A stretch of DNA of 64,000 bases from Pelomyxa schiedti. Lineage: Eukaryota > Protista > Evosea. Position 1 is the stretch's first letter, and each line of letters opens with the position of its first letter. The position numbers and the translations under genes were made by a program. The stretch is taken from assembly GCA_020536535.1 (NCBI GenBank), contig JAHLWZ010000331.1, positions 854-64,853 on the forward strand, given 5' to 3'. The notes beneath the pieces were generated by a model, which had not been told where the DNA came from, did no database searches, and saw only the letters and a list, made by a program, of their open reading frames with translations. Of this stretch, positions 1 to 59,711 are shown piece by piece.

Positions 1-794
1 ACTGGAGATTGCTCATGCTCCTCAGACTTCCCAGTTCTTCAGGTTGTACAGTACATATATGCCATTCTTTAATTACTTTACAGTTACTTCGAGTGGTGAA
101 AACATCTGGTTTCAGGCACGAGATGGGTCCGGTTTATGTATGCGAAAGAGGTACAGCTAACCCTATCATGGTCCATGCTGTTCCCCACACCCATGATGAC
201 CCTGGGTGGCTGGAAACGTAAAATGTGGTTCTGTAGGAGTCACCCTAACAACATATAAGTGTCGAGGGGTACTATGACTGTTGTGTGAAGAATATTCTTG
301 ATACTGTTACCCAGAGTTTGGCAGAAAATCCAAACCGACGCTTTACGTATGCCTCTTTAACTCATTGATTTTCTCATTCCAATCCAAAGGTATGTTGAAA
401 TGTCTTTTTTCACTATCTGGTGGAACCAACAAACTGATGACGTTAAGTCCCTTGTTAAAAAACTGGTTAGTACAGGGCAGCTCGATTTCACAATGTTGGT
501 TCAGGTTAATTCAATTTCCCAACCTTAAACTTCTTCAGAGGTGGCTGGGTTATGCCAGATGAGGCCTGCCCATCATACACTGATCTCATAGATCAAGTAT
601 GTTAATCACTGATCACAAAAACTTGGTGAATTAATTTTCTTTGTAACAGATGACTGCAGGGCATCTTTTCCTGAAAGACACATTTGGAGAAACCAGTGTA
701 CCTACTGTGGGATGGCAAATTGATCCTTTTGGGGTTTTTCCCCGCCAAGACCCTATCCCATCTTACACATGTTTTTCAGCATAGTAATGGCAAC
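1..794 (+). CDS. GH38 alpha-mannosidase, 5' part of a paralog (entered at window start, cut by N gap)
   Basis: Manual splicing gives TGDCSCSSDFPVLQ...VHAVPHTHDDPGWLET-VEGYYDCCVKNILDTVTQSLAENPNRRFT-YVEMSFF..GGWVMPDEACP..VGWQIDPFG, the GH38 N-domain motifs. Colinear with 48713-49506. Confidence 0.93.
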
Positions 795-894
795 NNNNNN
801 NNNNNNNNNNNNNNNNNNNNNNNNNNNNNNNNNNNNNNNNNNNNNNNNNNNNNNNNNNNNNNNNNNNNNNNNNNNNNNNNNNNNNNNNNNNNNN
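795..894. other. assembly gap (100 N)
   Basis: Run of exactly 100 N. Confidence 1.
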
Positions 895-1173
895 TGGTAT
901 GTGTTTCAAATCAGTGGGGAAAAAAAAAAAAAAAACCGATCAACCCACCAACCTACCAAGCCATCCCTGTCCTATGTAATTCACTCCCACTAACAATGTG
1001 AACAGCCTTCAGTGGACCACCTGTCATACTTGATGCGGCACATCTTCGCGCACCCACAAGAGGCCAAGGCAAGGGGCGCCCTCGCACGCCACAAAATCGT
1101 CACTCACTACTCCCAAGAGCGTGTGGCAGCTCTGGTACTCGACAGACTCACATCCCTCACAAGCAAGAGATAA
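895..1173 (+). CDS. 3' end of a GT4-like glycosyltransferase (partial, last exon about 1006-1173)
   Basis: After the acceptor aacag the exon reads PSVDHLSYLMRHIFAHPQEAKARGALARHKIVTHYSQERVAALVLDRLTSLTSKR*, resembling the C-terminal helices of GT-B/GT4 enzymes (P-x-x-x-HL-x-x-LMR...A-x-x-RG-x-x-AR...YS). Not in the supplied ORF track. Confidence 0.6.
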
Positions 1174-1220
1174 CAGATTCGTGTTGGAAACCGTTTCTTC
1201 CCAAAAAAAAAAAAAAACCC

Positions 1221-3050
1221 ATGTCATCAACACTCGCAGCAGACAAGGCAGCCACCAACCTGGTGTTGCCGCAACCCACATTGCCTCTGACAGGACAAAA
1301 CCAGCCAGATAACTCCATTGTGGGAGCAACAACGGCCGCTGCAAATGCACCTCAACCCCTACCTCTGCAACCCATAACTACGGGTGCAGTCCGGCAAAAC
1401 AAGCCGGGGTTTTGCAACCATTATTTTGAGGGCAAGCACAGATTTTGCGGGCTTCCTGTGCACAAGGGGATGATGTACTGCGTCACGCACGCACCCGCTT
1501 CTGTTTTGCACACGATGCCTTGTCCGATAGACCCCTCTCAGTACGTGTGCACGTTCAACTGTATTGTGGGAATGTGATGGCGTAGGATTTAGATTAGACA
1601 TTTTGGATTATACTGATGTACCTTTTTTTTTTCACCACTTTTTTTGTAGCACTATTTTTGTCAAGGATTTGGAGAAACACTCTAAGAGGTGCCCTGGTAA
1701 TAAGCTCAATATCAAACCACCATTTTTCGTTCAAGACATCAATATTGGTATGGTATCCTATGTGTTCCAGGAGCAACTTATAATGTAATACAGGGACGGA
1801 TTCAGAGGAGAGCACACTTCCATCAAATGAATCGGATTCATGCCTTCAAGCTGATACTGTGCTAATCTCCAAGGTAAATGCGGCCTGGTTAAAGTGGAAA
1901 CATATTCTCAATGTGCAAGTCAGTCACATATCTCATCCAAATTGTACTTGTCCTCCACTTGACACTAAAGTAGAGAAAACAGCGCAATTTAAAGGTTCAG
2001 TATTTCTTCATTTCTCTTGTTTGACCTAAATGGTTCCTAGCTTCACAGAAACATACACCCCAAATTTCTTCAATACTAGCTCATATGGCCAACAAGGGAT
2101 TGGCTAACTTAGATACCAGTAGACAAGAGGAATCTCAACAATCATCAACCTCGCCTCCCAGTGCTGAAGCAGCCTCTGCAACTACAACAACCATAAACAG
2201 TTCCCAACTTAATTCGCCATCGTTCTGCTATCTAGAGTTTGGCGCAGGAAAAGCCCATTTGACAAGAGCACTGATGGAAGTGGTTTCACTGAATCACACA
2301 TTTTGCTTAGTTGACAGAGGCAAGTTCAGGCATGGTGTGAGTATCCAACGTACAAAAAAAAATTTAAACCAACACAATCCACAGGCTGAGAAGGGCAGAT
2401 CAGCTCGAACAATCGAGAGGCTAAGAGTCGACATTAAAGACTTGGATATCTCTAAAGTTAGTGTTATTCACAACTCCACCACTCTAGTTGCTTATGGGAA
2501 GCATTTGTGTGGGGCAGCCACTGATCTGTCACTGAGGTTGTAAAATAATCCAGGTGGAAATATCACCGTTCTAATTATAACCAAAGGTGCATGAATGGGT
2601 GCCGACAACCATGTGCTATTTTCATTGCGTTGTGCTGCTACCATAAGTGCTCTTGGAGACCATACATAAGTAAATCACTTTCTCAACATTTACCCGTAAC
2701 AATCACCGAAGACAAACAATTTCTCGCTGAAAATGGATTCACTGTGGGTGATTTCCCGCGCCTGTGTGCACTCACCAGGTTTTGTGGATAGATATTGGGT
2801 AGAACTATCTAAAGATACTGACACTTACTCCCGCAGCTGGTATACGAGTGGAGTCAGAGAGGAACAAGCCACTCCAGAGCAAAGAGCAGACGCACAAGAG
2901 CGAGCACAAATCGGGCGACATGCAAGGGATGTTATGTTGATAGGCCGGCTGATGAAGTTGTCACAGTGGGGGTTCAATTGCGAAACCTTTGAGTATGTAC
3001 CAGATACAATTTCTTTGGAAAACTTGCTGCTATTCGCTTCCAGAAATTAA
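1221..3050 (+). CDS. TRM13: tRNA:m4X (2'-O) methyltransferase TRM13, multi-exon
   Basis: CCCH finger FCNHYFEGKHRFC..YCVTH; CHHC finger CPIDPS..DLEKHSKRCP; LEFGAGKAHLT, LVDRG, RLRVDIKDL, GKHLCGAATDLSLR, IALCCYHKC, ISLENLLL. Confidence 0.92.
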
Positions 3051-3167
3051 GAGTACTCTTACTCTGTTGTTTTGAAAGAAAAGCATTCTAGTCATAGAGA
3101 AGGATAAAAGAGTTTTTATTTGGAGAAAAAGCCACTGTTACAAGGCAATGCAGAGGTCTTAAGGATT

Positions 3168-3709
3168 TTATCTGCTGTGGAGCTCCCTGTGGTGCTGAGA
3201 TAGAGCACAGCAGCCGCAGCAGAATGACAGTATACAGTCACCAGCAACTCCTCCCTGAAGGGGGATTTAGTTGTGATTGACGTGGGTTGCTTGTGCTTTG
3301 TGCTAGGTTACATACATCAATGTTGTACTTGTTTCGTATGGATTGCCTTTGCTGGCATGTGGGGAAGAAAGACAACCCACAAATGGCCAAGAGACAAAAG
3401 ATAGCTGCATTTACCACCATACTGTTTTATATTTGGTTAAATCATAAGTCAATATAAGTGGCTATGTTAAGAGAAAAGACACCTGTTACCCATAATTCCC
3501 TCGCCGTGCTTCTCAGCATTCATACCATATTGAACGCAAGGAATGCACCAAGAAATCAAGCCTGGGGCGAGGGTCAAAAAAAACTCCGGGAAAAAAAAGA
3601 AAAAAATGAAAAACACACATGAAACTGGGTCGCTCAAGCAACCGCAGAATTTGCTGTTCCACTTGTCCTGTGGCTCAATGGCGTTGGCAATCTTCTCCAG
3701 CGAATCCAT
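3168..3709 (-). CDS. PLAC8-family Cys-rich protein
   Basis: WNSKFCGCLSDPVSC..ISWCIPCVQYGMNAE..RQSIRNKYNID|GGVAGDCILSFCCGCCALSQHHRELHSR*. Confidence 0.9.
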
Positions 3710-47778: not shown

Positions 47779-50700
47779 ATGGTGCTTCCCGGTCGCATTG
47801 GGTTCGTTTTTGCTGCGACCACGGCACTGTTGCTGTGTGAGATCGGGTGTGTTTGTAGCGCTGCGGGGGCGGACGCGCAACCGCATTATGGGGGTGTGTT
47901 TGGGTCGTACTTGTACTCGCTTGAGCTGAGGCCGTTTATTGAGTGTGAGGACCCTAACAGATTCACTGGGAGGTGCTCGTGTCCTCAGGTATTCATTCCA
48001 TGTCTATTAATTGAGGATTTCTATGGGAAATTCAATTTAATGTGAAATACATATTTCTGTGTTTGGGTGGAATGTGGTGGAGTGATGTTTGATGTGTTTG
48101 TTGGTGCCTGTTGATATGGAATCACTTACTATTTGCAATAGGGTTACACAGGGGAGGTCACTGGCAGGATTATAAATGATGGAGATGGAACTGGTGACTT
48201 TGGTGGGTACTTGTGGTATTGTGCTGATGGCACTCTCTATCCCTCTTCTGGGTGGGGTGGTTCCTACCAGGTTTTTGATTTTTGTTACAATTATGTATTG
48301 ACAAATGGTTTTCCATACCAGGAGGATGCAAATGTGACAGATGGACAAGGGGTATTCCTTATCCTTCCCTGTCTAAATGAGTTCTGACGGTTTTTTTCAG
48401 TGCCGATTCCCGAACAAATACACTGGTACCTGCACTTGCCCTAGTGGATTCCAGCCGATCACCGCTCAAGTCCTCACCGACTTGGTTCGCAATACAGTAT
48501 TGTAATGTTCTTGTATTCACAGAGTCTCAGGATGGAAGTGGTGCAAAACTTATTGAATCTTATGTTTCTTTCTGTTGGGCGAATTCGAGCCTCTCGGAGG
48601 CCTATGCTTTTGGTGGTGCCTATCAGGTATCCACTGTTTGTACTTTTTTCCATTTCTGAGCTTAAAAAAAGACTAATGAAGATGGGACGGGGTGCCTCAC
48701 TGCAAATCCGGCAACTGGAGATTGTTCATGCTCCTCAGACTTCCCAGTTCTTCAGGTAGTACAGTACATATACGGCATTCTTTAATTACTTTGCAGTTAC
48801 TTCGAGTGGTGAAAACATCTGGTTTCAGACATGAGATGGCTCCGGTTTATGTATGTGAAAGAGGTACAGCTAACCCTATCATGGTCCATGCTGTTCCCCA
48901 CACCCATGATGACCCTGGGTGGTTGGAAACGTAAAATTTGGTTCTGTAAGAGTCACCCTAACAACATATAAGTGTCGAGGGGTACTATGACTGTTGCGTG
49001 AAGAATATTCTTGATACTGTTACCCAGAGTTTGGCAGAAAATCCAAACCGACGCTTTACGTATGCCTCTTTAACTCATTGATTTTCTCATTCCAATCCAA
49101 AGGTATGTGGAAATGTCTTTTTTCACTATCTGGTGGAACCAACAAACTGATGACGTTAAGTCACTTGTTAAAAAACTGGTTAGTACAGGGCAGCTCGATT
49201 TCACAATGTTGGTTCAGGTGAATTCAATTTCCCAGCATTAAACTTCTTCAGAGGTGGCTGGGTTATGCCAGATGAGGCCTGCCCATCATACACTGATCTC
49301 ATAGATCAAGTATGTTAATCTGATCACAAATAACTTGGTGAATTAATTGTCTTTGTAACAGATGACTGCAGGGCATCTTTTCCTTAAAGACACATTTGGA
49401 GAAACCAGTGTACCTACTGTGGGATGGCAAATTGATCCTTTTGGGGTTTTTCCCCGCCAAGACCCTATCCCATCTTACACATGTTTTTCAGCATAGTAAT
49501 GGCAACACCTGGACTTACTCTCAGTTCGATTTTGATTTTCTGGTATCTCTTTCTTTTTCCTATCTATTTCCTTAACATGCTTTTCAGGTGGAAGTCCGAA
49601 TAGATTACAAGGCAACTTACCCACCAGAATCTCGTTGAAACCGCGCACTTAACTACACATTTTAGGATATTGACTGGAGGCGCGCCAATGTAGAGATGGA
49701 GTGGATTTGGAGGCCATTCCGAAGTTTTGATGAGTATCCTGAAAAGCAGGACATCTTTTCATTTGAACTCTATAATCGTACGTGTTGTGTTCCTTAAGCC
49801 TGCGTTAATTACACACCAAGATTACGGCTGGCCACCTGGAAGAACTGTCACTGATTCGGTGGGTAACGATCTTACTTTGTCCGAGACTACAAAGGAGAGC
49901 CTCCATAAGCGAAGGCTTACCGCCTCCACTGTTACTTGGGACCCAGTAGCTTTCTCACACTGGACCTATAACACAGTTAATTCCTATAAAACTCTCAACA
50001 TTCTGGCACCGATGGGTTTGTAGAGTCATCTTGTACTATCTTCTTCTCACTCCTCTTTTTGTTTTTTTTTATGAAGGAAACGATTTTGAGTGGCAGGTAT
50101 GTTACATTTCCACTTAGCTATTGTCCTCACATCCTTAAGAACGCAGAGCCTGACTTCGTTGGGCTTGATGAACTTATTTCTTTCTTTGACGAACACCCTG
50201 AGTATGGCATCAATCTTTTCTACAGGTATAGAAACCAACACTCAATAAAGACTAAAAATACTCTGCCAGTACTCCTGCTACTGTTGGAAACACATTATTG
50301 AGTGCGAGTGAATCTCTGTCTCTCAAAACAGATGACTTCTTCCCTTATTCAGGTATAAAAGAACTACGTGGAATCAAATTTACTAATACCTCGCAGAAGC
50401 TTTCAACGACTACTGGACTGGTTTTTCTATTTTATTCATATCTAATAATAACGGACCTTCTGCAGGCTACTTTACCAGCCACCCAGCATTCAAAAGATAT
50501 GTCCGAACCTCATCAGCTTTATTTCACAGTGCGCGGCAAATACATACACTAGCCTCGAGTGATGGGAAACTTCTTGATAGTCTTGATGCCCCATGGCACG
50601 CAGTTTCTGTGACACAGGTACCTAGCATTGCATAAAATTTACATTCACTCGTTTTTAGCATCATGACGCAATTACTGGAACCTCCAAGTCATTTGTCTAC

Positions 50701-52801
50701 GACGATTATCTCTCAGTGCGTACCTCACCAATTACTTCTTATTATTCACCGAAAAAGCAATTGGATGACGGCAATAATGCCTCGGCAGCGGTAATTCTGT
50801 CATCATTGAGTGCTCTCGATAGCTCTATCTCATCTTCTTGGGAACTCTGCCCTCCAATTAAGGAAGATCCATCTTACTGTTCTGAACTAGGTGCCGGCCG
50901 CATGGTTCGACGAATTCAAATTACCAGTAGAGTCTCATTACACAACCACAGGTTATGGTTCTCAATTCAATTGGTAGCAGTCAGGATATTCCAATCAACT
51001 TACAAGTTTCTTCTGACTCACTGTGTGTATTTGATTCCGATGGTACTGAGACTGCTTCTCAAATTAGGTTCTATTTTTTTCTTTTCCATCTTTTGGTTAA
51101 TAACCATACCAAGAGAGGCACCGTGGGTAAGCGGTCTGAATTTATTTGAGCTTTCCTTTATGGCAGAGGACATGCCATCACTTGGGGCTCGCACTTACTC
51201 ACTTGAAGCTTGTAGTAATGCTGAGAAGATCGCAAATAAAGTTTCCAGTCTACAAGCAACTGTATCCATCGAAAATAACTTCTACAAACTGTCATTTGAC
51301 ACGGCTACCAACACTCTGTCATCCATTCTTGAAAAGACAAATGGAAACACAGCATCTGTCAAGTTACTATTCTCCATATTTCCATGCTTACAACCAATGC
51401 CTTGCAAAGTATTGATGTGTTGTATTATGTTCCTGAAGGTTCACCGCTTATACCACAAGATGGTGCCTATGTCTTTAACACCAGGAAATCTCCGCTAGCA
51501 TTCCCCGGGCCGAGGTATAAACTGAGCATCAGAAGCAAAATGTAACCAAGTTAGAGGTGCCTTGACTACCTTTTATGGAGATGTTTATCAGGAGGTCGAG
51601 GTAATTGTAGATCAAGCTAGTAACGTTATCCAAAGGTGGTCTTTCCTTTTCCTCTTTTAATTTCCAACTCATAACCTCAGGTTCCGTTTAAACAAAAATG
51701 ATCCCTTCATTGAAATGTACACAACTGTCGGTCCAATCAGTACGACAGATAAAAATGGAAAGGTGTCTTAACATTTTTGCTAGCAACTAGTTTAATTAAT
51801 CCATGTTTCAAGGAAGTCATTGTCAAAATCCAGAGTCCCATATCATCTGCAGGCTTCCTCTACACTGATACGCACAATCTTGAATTCCAGAAACGAGAGT
51901 AAATTCCCATTTTTACTCATCCTAACTAACTCACAAAGATACAACGTTCTTTATGGAAAGTATATAATGGATAACGATATAAGGTGAGCTACACAAATCC
52001 AAACATCTCTAATTCTTAAAAAGTGGGAATTATTACCCAATATCATCAGCAGCCTATATCAAGTGAGTCACTCAGTGTGTTTCCACTTTTAAACCCATTC
52101 AACCTTCTCAAAGGGATGACAACCTGATGCTGGCAATTCTTCCGGACCGGGCACAAGGAGCCGCAAGCCTTACAAACGGATCCCTGGAAGTGATGATTCA
52201 CAGAAGGCTTCTTAAAGACGGCGACCACAAAGGAGTCGGAGAACCTCTTGATGATTCCACAACAATATGCACCAAACAACTCCTCATTCTATCCTCCGCC
52301 GACTCTGGAATTTCTACGCTCCGCTCCGCGGCTCTGCGCCACGAGCACAGCCCCGCAATTCTATCAAGTATTTCCGGCACAACTCCGGCACCATTCTCCT
52401 GGTCTCCAATGAGCGTTTCCCTTCCCGCAAATGTTCATTTGACCACCCTTCAGGTTGCGAATGTCCCTCCTAATAATACTAAATCCCACACAAATAAGTT
52501 ATATCTCACACACATCACACCTCTAACCAACCAAAATGTAATGCAGGTGACCCGGTATGATATCTTTGGAGCCTCAACACTGGTGAGGCTGCACCACAAC
52601 TTTGCGGTGGATGAGGACCCTGTTCTGTCACAGCCAGCCACAGTCGACCTCTCTTCGCTGTTCGCTGATTGGACAGTAACATCGGCAGTGGAGGTGTCAC
52701 TGTCAGCAGCACACAAGGTCCAATCACTGTCCTCAATGACCATCACCCTCAACCCAATGGAGTTCAAGACTTTCGCGGTCTCCCTCACAAAGAAACAATA
52801 A
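47779..52801 (+). CDS. lysosomal-type GH38 alpha-mannosidase with signal peptide and N-terminal triple Cys-rich (MPEG1-P2/MABP-like) module
   Basis: Signal MVLPGRIGFVFAATTALLL; three GGxY..C..N..TGxC[ST]C repeats; HTHDDPGW, GGWVMPDE, GWQIDPFG, YWTG, HHDAITGT, DRAQG..SL..GSLEVMIHRR..DD..GVGEPL, LNPMEFKTF. Confidence 0.95.
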
Positions 52802-52952
52802 GATGGAACTCCTATGTTTGTGGCCAGGTCTTTTTTTATTAAAGTGTGTAATTATGCAAGGTCTGTGACCAACTTGGAGCGCTCCAAGGAACACGGCAGA
52901 TCTACGAAAAGCTTACCATGATTTTTTTTATTGTTGTGAAAAACCCTGAAAC

Positions 52953-55900
52953 TCAATCATTGGCATCAAAGTAGTCCCACACTTTCAGAAGGGTGGCGAT
53001 TGCCGGCCTTGCTCTGGGGTTGGGTTCCAGGCACACCCTCACAATCTCATTTCCCAGTCGCCACAGCCGATTATGACGATTACTACCACCATCAGTTTTG
53101 GACGTTGGTACTGCAGGATGATGTAATAAGGGGAATGGAGTGATGAGACCCCTGAGGAGGTCCCGGCCAATCGCACTGGGGTACAAGTGGGGTTGGCGCT
53201 CGTTGTTGCTGCTGTTGTCATAGTCTGTGAACATGTACTTGCTGTTGGATGTGATGTGTGAGTATGGTTGCGTCAGTGGGTACAAGAGGGCACTTGTTAT
53301 CATTCCTTTATGTCAATCAGTTAGTCTTGGAAATGTACACCTTTGGTACATCCACTTACCAAAACTCCAGACATCAGCCTTGGGGTTAAATTTCAAGCCA
53401 GAAAGAACCTCTGGGGCACAGAATTTCAGTTCAGAATGACACTGTGACGTTTGCACTGTCCCCAGCATTCGGTAATAACCCCCAGAGAGGAAAGTCACTG
53501 GTACAAGAGGATCCTTGATCTGACTCATTTGAGATGAAGAGACGAGACAGAGTTTGAACAAAACCTGTGCCCAAGGCCCAGTCTGCGATTCATCCATTGA
53601 CAGCACAATGATACTATCTGTGGTTCACAGAGTAAAAATGCAATTGAAAAGGGGTGCAGCCACATACCATGAGAAATCTTTGCGTGCACATTTGGTGGCT
53701 TTGTACTCTTGTGAAACTGGTTTAATGCACAGGCCACATCCTTGAGCATCTTCAACCTGAGGCTGATTGGGAGAACCTGATCAAGGATTGATGTTGTCCC
53801 ATTCCCTTTTTCAATGAGCAAACTCAGCAGCTCACCCAAGTTGATGCCTTTTTTGATGTCGATGTTGTAACAACTCAGTGCACCCATAGAGGTTGATGGT
53901 GGTGTTTTTGTTTTCTTGTTGGATCCAGAGTGAGCCTGGAGCATCATCTCCTTGAGCAACGTAACCAGCTCGCTCAAACCCCTTCCTTCGTCCTCGTCCT
54001 GGTGAAGTGCCACAAGGTTTGGCGCCACTGCTGCCAGGTCAGATTTACCATTTCCGCTTCCACAGGTCAGCTGGCTCTCTCCATTTTTCACTGCTCTGAG
54101 GATGTCATCTTTGGTGAAATAGAACGGGCTGGGTCGCAGTGCCGATAGCTTTCCATTGTGGGCCCACTTTTCTGGTGAAGAATCACCAGCCAACAAGCAA
54201 TGGGGACAAGGGAACAGCTCAACAACGGGGAGTAGTGGTGTTTCACTTTCTTCAAACCTAGATGACGACGACGGATGGAGGTTATAAATTGTGTGCATCA
54301 GGGATCCCCATAAGCTCTGCTGTTGTGGTTGTGTCCAGTGTTCGTTGCATTCTGATCGTATGCAAATTGAAAGGGTGTCACCACTGAATGTAATGAGTAA
54401 TAACACTTGGCGGTCTGGCTGTGGTGTTCCTGGATGTGAGCAAGCATTGAATACCGCGAATGCATCGCCCCATAAAAACTTGGGAGACCATGGAAGATGC
54501 CTTGAGATTCCAGAAATTAGTTTGAAGAACAGATCCTGAGTAAAAGCTGGAAACTTGATTGATCTCCCATTCAGTTGTCTTGGGATAGGAAGGGAAGTTT
54601 CAGCCCTCAGGTCTTCCAGAGTACTGGAGGGGGCACCTTTGGCAACAATGGGGAGAAGTGAAAGGTGTTCCTTTATGGATGGATGAGAATACGATAGAAG
54701 GTTGTGAATGTCACCAAACTCCACCAAAATTGATTGCACTGCAGCTTCATTTGGGTGGGTTGGAACCCCAATCAACCCATCAAATGTATGCTGTTTGTGC
54801 CAAAACCTTCGGATTTCCTGAATGAGCTGAGCCAAAAAGGAACGAGGCTCCACAATGACCAAGGAAGAGAGACCAGTATCTGGTGCAGCACCAGGGTGTC
54901 CTTGTGACAAGAGCCAAAAAGGATACCTGAAGTGAATAATGGTCCCAATGTCAGCCAAGAACTCAGCACACTTCTCAATTTCCACCATTGTTGACACACC
55001 GTGCCTCTTTGCTGTCTCAACAAACTGTGTCCACGTCATTGAATTAGTTCTCACTTTGTCCCTGCTTTGGGTGATTTGCTTGTTCAGCATCATCCAACTT
55101 TCAGGGATTGACTGGGGAATTCCATCATCACATACCTGGTCTCGAATAGATTCAAGGAGTGCGGGTACAATGGGATAGGTTTCCATCATTCCTTGAGACT
55201 TATTATTGTAGTGCCAGCCATTTGCACTACCCATGTGCAGAAAGAAAGCAGTGATGTCCTCGAACACCAACAAGTTCCTCATGAGCTCAGATAACTTTGG
55301 ATTGTTTGGCTCAATTCCCTCCATGTGGGTTCCAACAGCAATGACTCCCCTCCTTGTCCTGGCACCCCTGCTCCTGGAAACTGAGATTTCATTCAACCAC
55401 CTTGTAACTGCCATGTGTGGTTCATTCATCATCAGTGCCTTGGATACATCAAAAACGACAATGAGCACAGACCTGCTGAGGAGGAACCATTGGTGGAATG
55501 GTGTCAGTGATTCCCCTCCTGTTCACATGTTAACAGATTTGTGAGCGTGATGTTTGAAGTGAATTTCTGGAAAAGTAAGTACTCACACACCGAGATCGCA
55601 GATGGTCCAACTGATTGTGTTTGTCCCTTTGAACCTCACATCCTGATGCATTGCAGCAATTCCTGTGTGAACATGCTTTGTGCTGGTAAGCTTTATCTTT
55701 CCCTCCATCATGCACTTCAACAGTGTTGTCTTCCCAACACATGTGTCTCCAACAATCACAAGTTTGTGTGTGTCTATCTTAACTCTGCCTCTCTTTTCCT
55801 GTCCAATGCTCCTGTGGTCACCATCACCAAATCTCACATTGGGCCTTTCAGCCAACCATTTCGGAATCACTGGAATGTTGTTACTGGAGAGGTCCAGCGT

Positions 55901-57052
55901 CCTGCATGTCAATGTCCTCAATGATTCAGGAACAGAGTCCAATCTCAAGTCTGACAGGTTGATGTTCTCAGAGTCAGTGAGAGTCCGAGCAAGGCACACA
56001 ACACCAACAGCAGTGTGGTTCTTTGCTAACAACCAAGTCCTGAGTGCCATTGACACTGTGAAGAATGGAAACTGTAAACAGTGATCATGCACAAGTTGCA
56101 TGACCATGTGGGCTGTTGTGAGATCAGCACATGAGATGTTGAGGATGGTGGGGATGTTTGGCAATGGAACCATTTGAGATTCAGATGGTAAGTCTGTGAA
56201 GCGAGGGGAACCGAGATTATCTTGGTGGAATGGGGGTACATCATGTGAGGAATCTGATATGAGTGATAGCAGGGTGTCCAAAGTTCCTGGTTTCGGAGTC
56301 CACTTCAGCATTTTGTAAGCACAAAACTGGTGTCAGTGTGAGTGGTGTTAAGGTTAACCGTGAGACACACAGAAAAAGCCATGTGAATGGAGAACAATCT
56401 GTAACTCACTGCATTCTGCTTTGGAACATGGTCATTTGGTTCACTGCAGTCAACAAGGTACAGATTTGCACTATGTGGCAAAACAGCGCCGCCGTTTCTG
56501 TCAGCCATGTCCAGGAATCGTTTAAGTACAAAAGATATTGCTGTGCAGAAACTCCTGAACTCAAAAGAATACAGAACGAGCAACACTCTTTCAGCAGGTT
56601 TCCTGTAAACGAGCAACGACAATTACAAAATCGAGAATGACAACAAGAACGGCAACAAAACATACATACACAGTGTAAAACTTTCGGGCATCATCTTTGA
56701 GCCTTTCGTTGTCGTCACAGCGGCGGAACGTATAGCGCATTTCGTGCTCTTCGCCTTTGGTTGTCGTTGGTGTTTGTTGTTTTAAAACCAACTTGTTACA
56801 CATGTGGATGGTGCTTTTGTCGAAAAAGGAGGCGGTGCCGTTGTTGTGTGTGTCGTCGCTGTCGCTGACGGTGGGGGTGGTGGCCGGTCGGGCCACTGTG
56901 ATTAATAATAATCCGAGGGTGTCTGTTGCGACCCGCACAGGTCCCAAGGTCGCAAGGGACTCGAACAGGGAGTCCACGCACGCCGGGGGACCAACAACGA
57001 AGCAGTGCAGGGAGCGCATTTTAAGTCTGTGTTGTCCTTTTTGTTTTTTCAT
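52953..57052 (-). CDS. ROCO protein: degenerate N-terminal GTPase-like domain, LRR, Roc, COR, pseudokinase
   Basis: LRR (INLSDLRLDSVPESL, LDLSSNNIPVIP); Roc KLVIVGDTCVGKTTLL..ICDLG|G..FHQWFL; COR IPESWMML..CAEFLADIGTIIHF; kinase C-lobe APEVL..KADVWSFG..CLEPNPRARP. Confidence 0.88.
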
Positions 57053-59611: not shown

Positions 59612-59711
59612 NNNNNNNNNNNNNNNNNNNNNNNNNNNNNNNNNNNNNNNNNNNNNNNNNNNNNNNNNNNNNNNNNNNNNNNNNNNNNNNNNNNNNNNNN
59701 NNNNNNNNNNN
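59612..59711. other. assembly gap (100 N)
   Basis: Run of exactly 100 N. Confidence 1.

Follow-up and report, generated by a model that had tools for sequence, protein, structure and literature searches.

The gene at positions 47779-52801 (+) of the analysed window, a stretch of 64,000 nucleotides from the anaerobic amoeba Pelomyxa schiedti, encodes a GH38 alpha-mannosidase joined at its N-terminus to a module of three cysteine-containing repeats. The fusion of this module to an intact GH38 enzyme is confirmed. Sequence profiles and predicted structure show homology between the module and the P2 (MABP-like) domain of MPEG1 (perforin-2), and we put the probability that the protein is an active GH38 enzyme carrying a P2-homologous targeting module at roughly 70%. 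The finding places a known domain in a new context and in a wider family, without adding a system of a new kind.

The locus was tied to a GenBank protein, KAH3763970.1 (P0154; “lysosomal alpha-mannosidase”, 1149 aa, Pelomyxa schiedti), by means of an exhaustive protein search with the C-terminal ORF of the gene and a cluster look-up. The sequence of the window is eukaryotic and its introns are very short; P0154 mapped back to the window as 32 exons from 47779 to 52798, separated by 31 introns. Hand-splicing of 47779-48933 (+) at GT..AG borders in phase 0 yielded a signal-peptide-like N-terminus and three cysteine-containing repeats, followed immediately after repeat 3 by VHAVPHTHDDPGWLET, the start of the GH38 catalytic domain. 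The product differs from P0154 only by two residues, at the acceptor of exon 5 (48525 versus 48531), an agreement that upholds the claim of an earlier note on this DNA that phase-0 splicing produces three repeats behind a signal peptide. The start codon and the putative signal peptide (approximately residues 1-30, early in exon 1; 47779-47868, +) were assigned by eye from the translation, in which a hydrophobic N-terminus is followed by a small-residue cleavage region.

The seven exons that reach from the signal peptide through the triple-repeat module to the first residues of GH38 lie on the forward (+) strand at 47779-47988 (exon 1), 48142-48270 (exon 2), 48322-48351 (exon 3), 48401-48484 (exon 4), 48531-48626 (exon 5, with an alternative start at 48525), 48672-48755 (exon 6) and 48797-48933 (exon 7). 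Exon 3 is a microexon of 30 nt, which we regard as real because the decapeptide that it contributes to repeat 2 is conserved both in an ortholog and in a Polyangiales protein discussed below. In repeats 2 and 3 alike, a phase-0 intron falls right after GGxYQ. Intron 4 (48484-48531) offers several in-frame options, with the donor at 48485 or 48497 and the acceptor end at 48524 or 48530, and these alter the protein by two to six residues within the repeat 2 hairpin.

The repeats were delimited by repeat alignment and a repeat HMM (i-E 4e-30 for repeat 1). Repeat 1 (residues 34-100; 47878-48231, +) is split by intron 1, repeat 2 (residues 105-169; 48244-48584, +) by introns 2, 3 and 4, and repeat 3 (residues 175-234; 48600-48865, +) by introns 5 and 6. 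Each is 60-67 aa long and contains four cysteines. In the alignment, the three are mutually 32% identical, with GG, C, N, T, CxC and the last C invariant, and tblastn searches between the repeats gave E values down to 4e-8. The whole module of approximately 200 aa has 12 cysteines at regular spacing, which probably form six disulfides. Neither Pfam nor NCBIfam has a model for the module or its relatives, the only matches being sub-threshold, EGF-like and placed on the motif CxCxxG[FY].

The GH38 body (residues 235-1149; 48866-52801, +) comprises exons 7-32 together with the stop codon, as delimited by phmmer, the exon map and RNA joints. Residues 237-1129 matched jack bean alpha-mannosidase (6b9p) in phmmer with an E value of 3e-120, and the same residues align with the bovine lysosomal (1o7d) and Golgi class II enzymes. 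HTHDD, QIDPFGHS and QHHDA (metal-binding, nucleophile Asp and HHD) aligned with the identical motifs of 6b9p. Pfam recognised Glyco_hydro_38N (6e-61), Alpha-mann_mid and Glyco_hydro_38C in the ortholog P0002. Judged by its sequence, the body is an intact catalytic enzyme. Bacterial contamination was ruled out by the 31 introns and by a GH38 body that is nearest to a plant lysosomal-type enzyme.

In a set of 150 representatives drawn from the GH38 proteins nearest to this one, the module was shared by the P0002 cluster only. P0004, the nearest further relative whose N-terminus is complete, passes from the signal peptide straight into GH38. Two further protist GH38 proteins carry lectin domains in this region: P0006 has a Ricin-B lectin (E 2e-17) between signal peptide and catalytic domain, and P0069 has, at the same N-terminal position, a match to the bulb-type mannose-binding B_lectin (E 1.9e-5, below Pfam’s cutoff).

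The junction between the module and the enzyme falls within exon 7 (48797-48933), a single open frame that holds the last strand of repeat 3 as well as VHAVPHTHDD, with the HTHDD metal-binding motif. The repeats hence run directly into the enzyme, as had been claimed earlier, and since one exon encodes both parts, their fusion is independent of splicing elsewhere. RNA from P. schiedti was present in one single-cell run, in which spliced contigs extended over 49048-52848 and none lay on the module exons; that the run stops at 49048 fits a 3′ bias. These contigs bear out at least eight GT..AG introns from 50615 to 52544, and their joints agree with the gene model (e.g., 50715/50758, 51362/51410 and 52450/52544). 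The remaining three runs contain the locus with its introns kept, i.e., genomic DNA.

Continuity of module and enzyme was found in a relative. The ortholog P0152 (1131 aa) has the same module and GH38 body, its module being 50% identical to that of Pelomyxa, and its ORF (31-3426) is single and free of introns within a JGI contig of 3482 nt, which has untranslated ends of 30 nt and 56 nt and a terminal A-run. With 31 introns in the Pelomyxa gene for comparison, these features make the contig look like an mRNA, on which the two parts would be continuous. An artefact of two separate genes was ruled out, as exon 7 crosses the junction and the mRNA-like contig of the relative bears both parts.

Further GH38 sequence is present in the window. 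The first 794 positions (1-794, +) contain the final part of repeat 3 together with the beginning of a GH38 domain, 97% identical to 48714-49506 with introns included. This copy is cut on one side by the window edge and ends on the other in a 100-N assembly gap (795-894), beyond which the sequence is unrelated to it. The scaffold probably took in an orphan contig here, from a paralog or haplotype. The earlier statement that a paralog at position 1 keeps the third repeat stands for the end of that repeat, the part left between the window edge and the gap. A tandem GH38 paralog, KAH3763973.1 (P0001; 59712-62846, +), has 89.6% DNA identity to 49737-52847, introns included, and begins exactly where another assembly gap (59612-59711) ends, its 5′ part being lost there. 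The GenBank model of this paralog has 868 aa with an unrelated N-terminus of 130 aa and no GH38 N-domain match, and was thus probably mis-joined across the gap.

Two other observations concern the surrounding sequence. At 48769-48883, short genomic contigs of runs X2 and X3 match 48820-48883 only and then continue into unlike sequence, and an ‘opposite strands’ joint connects 48820 to 51576; these may stem from yet another, diverged copy or from an artefact of the assembly graph. On the minus strand, 53525-56311 contains large ORFs in which a Roc-type GTPase P-loop and leucine-rich-repeat-like sequence were seen by eye, which suggests a Roco/LRRK-like kinase gene.

Profile searches of the PDB linked the module to MPEG1 and to no other protein. 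A 25-column profile of three exon pieces, compared with 177,635 PDB sequences, matched MPEG1 chains only (E 0.002), with N-x-x-T-G-x-C-x-C-P-x-x-F aligned with NPLTGDFSCPSGY of the P2 domain. A six-repeat profile drawn from two amoebozoan proteins reached the isolated P2 crystal chain 6sb1_A with an E value of 4.6e-5 and detected all three P2 repeats. The 15-member family profile likewise matched MPEG1 only, at an E value of 4.1e-9 and in three stretches; within these its cysteine columns coincide with MPEG1 cysteines, the disulfides of the module being predicted. According to Ni et al. (PMC6989145), the P2 domain is built of three repeats related by pseudo-threefold symmetry, and each of them has one conserved disulfide. 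As the MACPF-EGF region of MPEG1 spans residues 31-371 (PMC6989145) and so ends at 371, the profile-matched region lies within P2.

Structure prediction depended on the alignment supplied: AlphaFold gave a pLDDT of 31.5 with two sequences and, with 15 sequences, a pLDDT of 80.6, a pTM of 0.81 and a four-strand pattern repeated three times. In a Foldseek comparison with the PDB, the best 13 matches were all MPEG1 P2 (E 1e-5 to 1e-3), although the TM scores were only 0.21-0.25, and VIA-align paired only 89-120 of 206 residues with solved P2 at 3-5 Å. The global superposition of the AlphaFold model on solved P2 is therefore poor; the module is P2-like by sequence and predicted local structure, and a whole compact prism is at best putative for this protein. 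The resemblance to the P2 domain proposed in the earlier note is therefore sustained by the profile matches and by the top of the Foldseek list, but not as a superposition of the whole domain. An ESM Atlas structural search also ranked MPEG1 first, while a feature search of the same resource with the module reached a top score of 0.58 and gave no lead. Among the AlphaFold DB clusters, MPEG1/MACPF proteins make up much of the match list, alongside a lipoprotein and bacterial members that include A0A7Y5KRY8 (TM 0.77), L7UDI5 and A0A0Q9EYL1, a GH5 protein with the module at residues 32-208.

The module belongs to an uncatalogued family, and the members that turned up here outside the P0002 cluster and MPEG1 are bacterial and archaeal extracellular proteins. 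Iterated searches led to P0156, P0159 and P0161, which come from a prokaryotic genome and are membrane-anchored with three compact repeats, and to P0157, P0162 and P0163, which are GC-rich bacterial proteins. The nearest relative of the Pelomyxa module is at the C-terminus of L003, a protein of 1025 aa with MXAN_6577-like cysteine-rich repeats from a Polyangiales MAG. The two modules are collinear repeat for repeat (36% identity, E 5e-30), and the triple arrangement is therefore older than their split. Two metagenomic members, L005 and L006, carry Ig, TIG or InlB B-repeat domains. Single-repeat forms, some of them from metagenomes, occur at the C-terminus of small prokaryotic proteins (L004, positions 506-721, from Micavibrio sp.; P0160, from a Nanoarchaeota MAG; L007; L008) and might assemble as trimers if the fold needs three repeats. 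A scan of metagenomes with ortholog-specific patterns found nothing, and a word-indexed search of proteins of 632-2010 aa returned the ortholog cluster only. In a maximum-likelihood tree of 11 modules (MPEG1 not among them), branches were long and the branching order was not settled; for this reason we claim neither a direction of transfer nor a donor.

Pelomyxa is a phagotroph that also houses prokaryotic symbionts. We propose that the protein would be a secreted or lysosomal-type GH38 enzyme in which the P2-homologous domain of approximately 200 aa, placed directly behind the signal peptide, acts as a non-catalytic targeting unit. Through the module, the enzyme would stay attached to a surface that is most probably rich in glycans, for instance the wall or envelope of prey taken up by the amoeba, and there it may act on mannosides at high local concentration. 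For Pelomyxa, the fusion thus points to a digestive enzyme aimed at a surface rather than one free in solution. That the ligand is a glycan or cell surface has, in our estimation, a little under an even chance. This ligand is made more likely by the lectins that sister GH38 enzymes have at the same position, and is further favoured by the GH5 fusion and by the surface or adhesin-like character of bacterial members. We know of no CBM family with this fold.

The only characterised relative of the module, MPEG1 P2, binds lipids and not sugars (PMC6989145, PMC6753088). If the Pelomyxa module acted in the same manner, binding of anionic lipids would tether the mannosidase to phagosomal or bacterial membranes, as the earlier note had it. 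The homology to P2 argues for such a tether, as do the range of ligands bound by MPEG1 P2, namely phosphatidylserine, cardiolipin, E. coli lipids and LPS (PMC6989145, PMC6753088), and the longest hairpin of the model, which is in repeat 1 (strands 43-55 and 60-70). However, lipid binding by MPEG1 P2 needs its extended repeat 1 hairpin, which is basic with a hydrophobic tip, and deletion of Y427-V452 abolishes it (PMC6989145). The corresponding tip in Pelomyxa is NDGDGTGD, and the module has 23 acidic versus 11 basic residues and a pI of 4.35 (4.72 for the ortholog module), so the lipid-binding element of MPEG1 is not conserved. Compact members such as P0156, moreover, have very short hairpins only. 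The proposal of membrane targeting through anionic lipids is not supported by these features, and we consider a membrane lipid an unlikely ligand, although it is the chief alternative to a glycan. The phagolysosomal location in the same proposal is putative.

It is improbable that the module has another role altogether. It could serve as a pro-domain, help the enzyme to fold or make it oligomerise, and might be cleaved off in maturation; this we rate as distinctly improbable. No sequence feature proves a ligand, and the lysosomal alpha-mannosidase of Dictyostelium is processed from a large precursor, which counts towards a pro-domain. However, the same module is also found by itself on membrane anchors, and bacterial adhesin-like proteins carry it at their C-terminus; both occurrences fit an autonomous binding unit, and the position that it takes up in Pelomyxa is held by lectins in sister enzymes. 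We also rejected, as scarcely credible, the reading that the repeats are ordinary EGF-like domains with nothing but the CxCxxG[FY] motif in common with MPEG1: weak Pfam matches (cEGF and EGF_2 at module residues 31-50, other EGF models in other members) and the AlphaFold DB label ‘EGF-like domain-containing protein’ on one bacterial relative speak for it, but the Pfam matches on the Pelomyxa module itself score under their cutoffs (18.8 bits versus 26.6; 18.4 versus 22.1) and cover some 15 residues, each repeat has four cysteines in 60-67 residues and not six in approximately 40, EGF chains were absent from PDB profile searches to an E value of 10 and from the structural matches, and the MPEG1 matches run for about 50 residues with the GGxYQ strand included.

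The earlier note did not recognise this architecture as described. The protein itself was already in GenBank; the module is in no Pfam or NCBIfam model, and no paper describing the architecture was found. Nor, in the literature searched, did any paper connect P2/MABP with glycosidases, Amoebozoa or myxobacteria, and the reviews consulted treat the P2 domain in MPEG1 only. The P2 fold was described as a topological arrangement not previously observed (Ni et al., PMC6989145). With homologues both in a glycosidase of an amoebozoan and in extracellular proteins of bacteria, P2 gains a history outside animals and outside pore-formers, and appears as an ancient and mobile module rather than as an innovation of animals. 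These homologues also suggest a candidate new family of accessory modules for glycoside hydrolases. They also comprise compact natural variants for structure-function work.

Taken together, the results allow a broader and tentative reading, to which we give a good deal less than even odds: that the module represents a new CBM-like family for glycans or microbial surfaces, that it has passed between myxobacteria-like bacteria and Archamoebae and become joined to hydrolases on two or more occasions (GH38 and GH5), and that the animal P2 domain descends from the same family. If this were true, the animal immune effector perforin-2 would have recruited a pre-existing binding module of prokaryotic type rather than inventing one.

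Compared with known systems, the Pelomyxa protein shares its whole catalytic body and the catalytic motifs with the lysosomal/vacuolar class II GH38 enzymes (jack bean 6b9p, bovine 1o7d). The solved lysosomal-type enzymes are alignable only from residue 231-238 onwards and have nothing equivalent to residues 1-230, in keeping with the earlier statement that canonical lysosomal mannosidases lack such a module. With P0006 and P0069 it has in common the enzyme family and an accessory domain between signal peptide and catalytic domain, although the accessory folds of these proteins are unlike and unrelated to the Pelomyxa module. The bacterial triple-repeat proteins share the four-cysteine pattern, and one of them is likewise joined to a glycoside hydrolase; they differ in their partners, which are MXAN_6577-like repeats, Ig/TIG domains or a membrane anchor, and in having no introns.

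The likeness to MPEG1 P2 (6sb1, 6u23) consists of three tandem repeats that each contain the strand [FWY]GGxYQ, a turn of the form N-x-x-T-G, the motif C-P-x-G-[FY] and a cysteine that closes the repeat, and of an extracellular or luminal, disulfide-bonded nature, the bonds being predicted for the Pelomyxa module. In contrast to MPEG1, the Pelomyxa repeats have four cysteines each, with CxC where MPEG1 has xSC, and the module is acidic and lacks the long basic hairpin with a hydrophobic tip. The one module is amoebozoan and the other animal, with a sequence identity of only 16-26%. Their partners also differ: in the MPEG1/perforin-2 family, P2 is preceded by the pore-forming MACPF domain, whereas the Pelomyxa protein has no MACPF match and bears its module at the N-terminus of a GH38 glycosidase.
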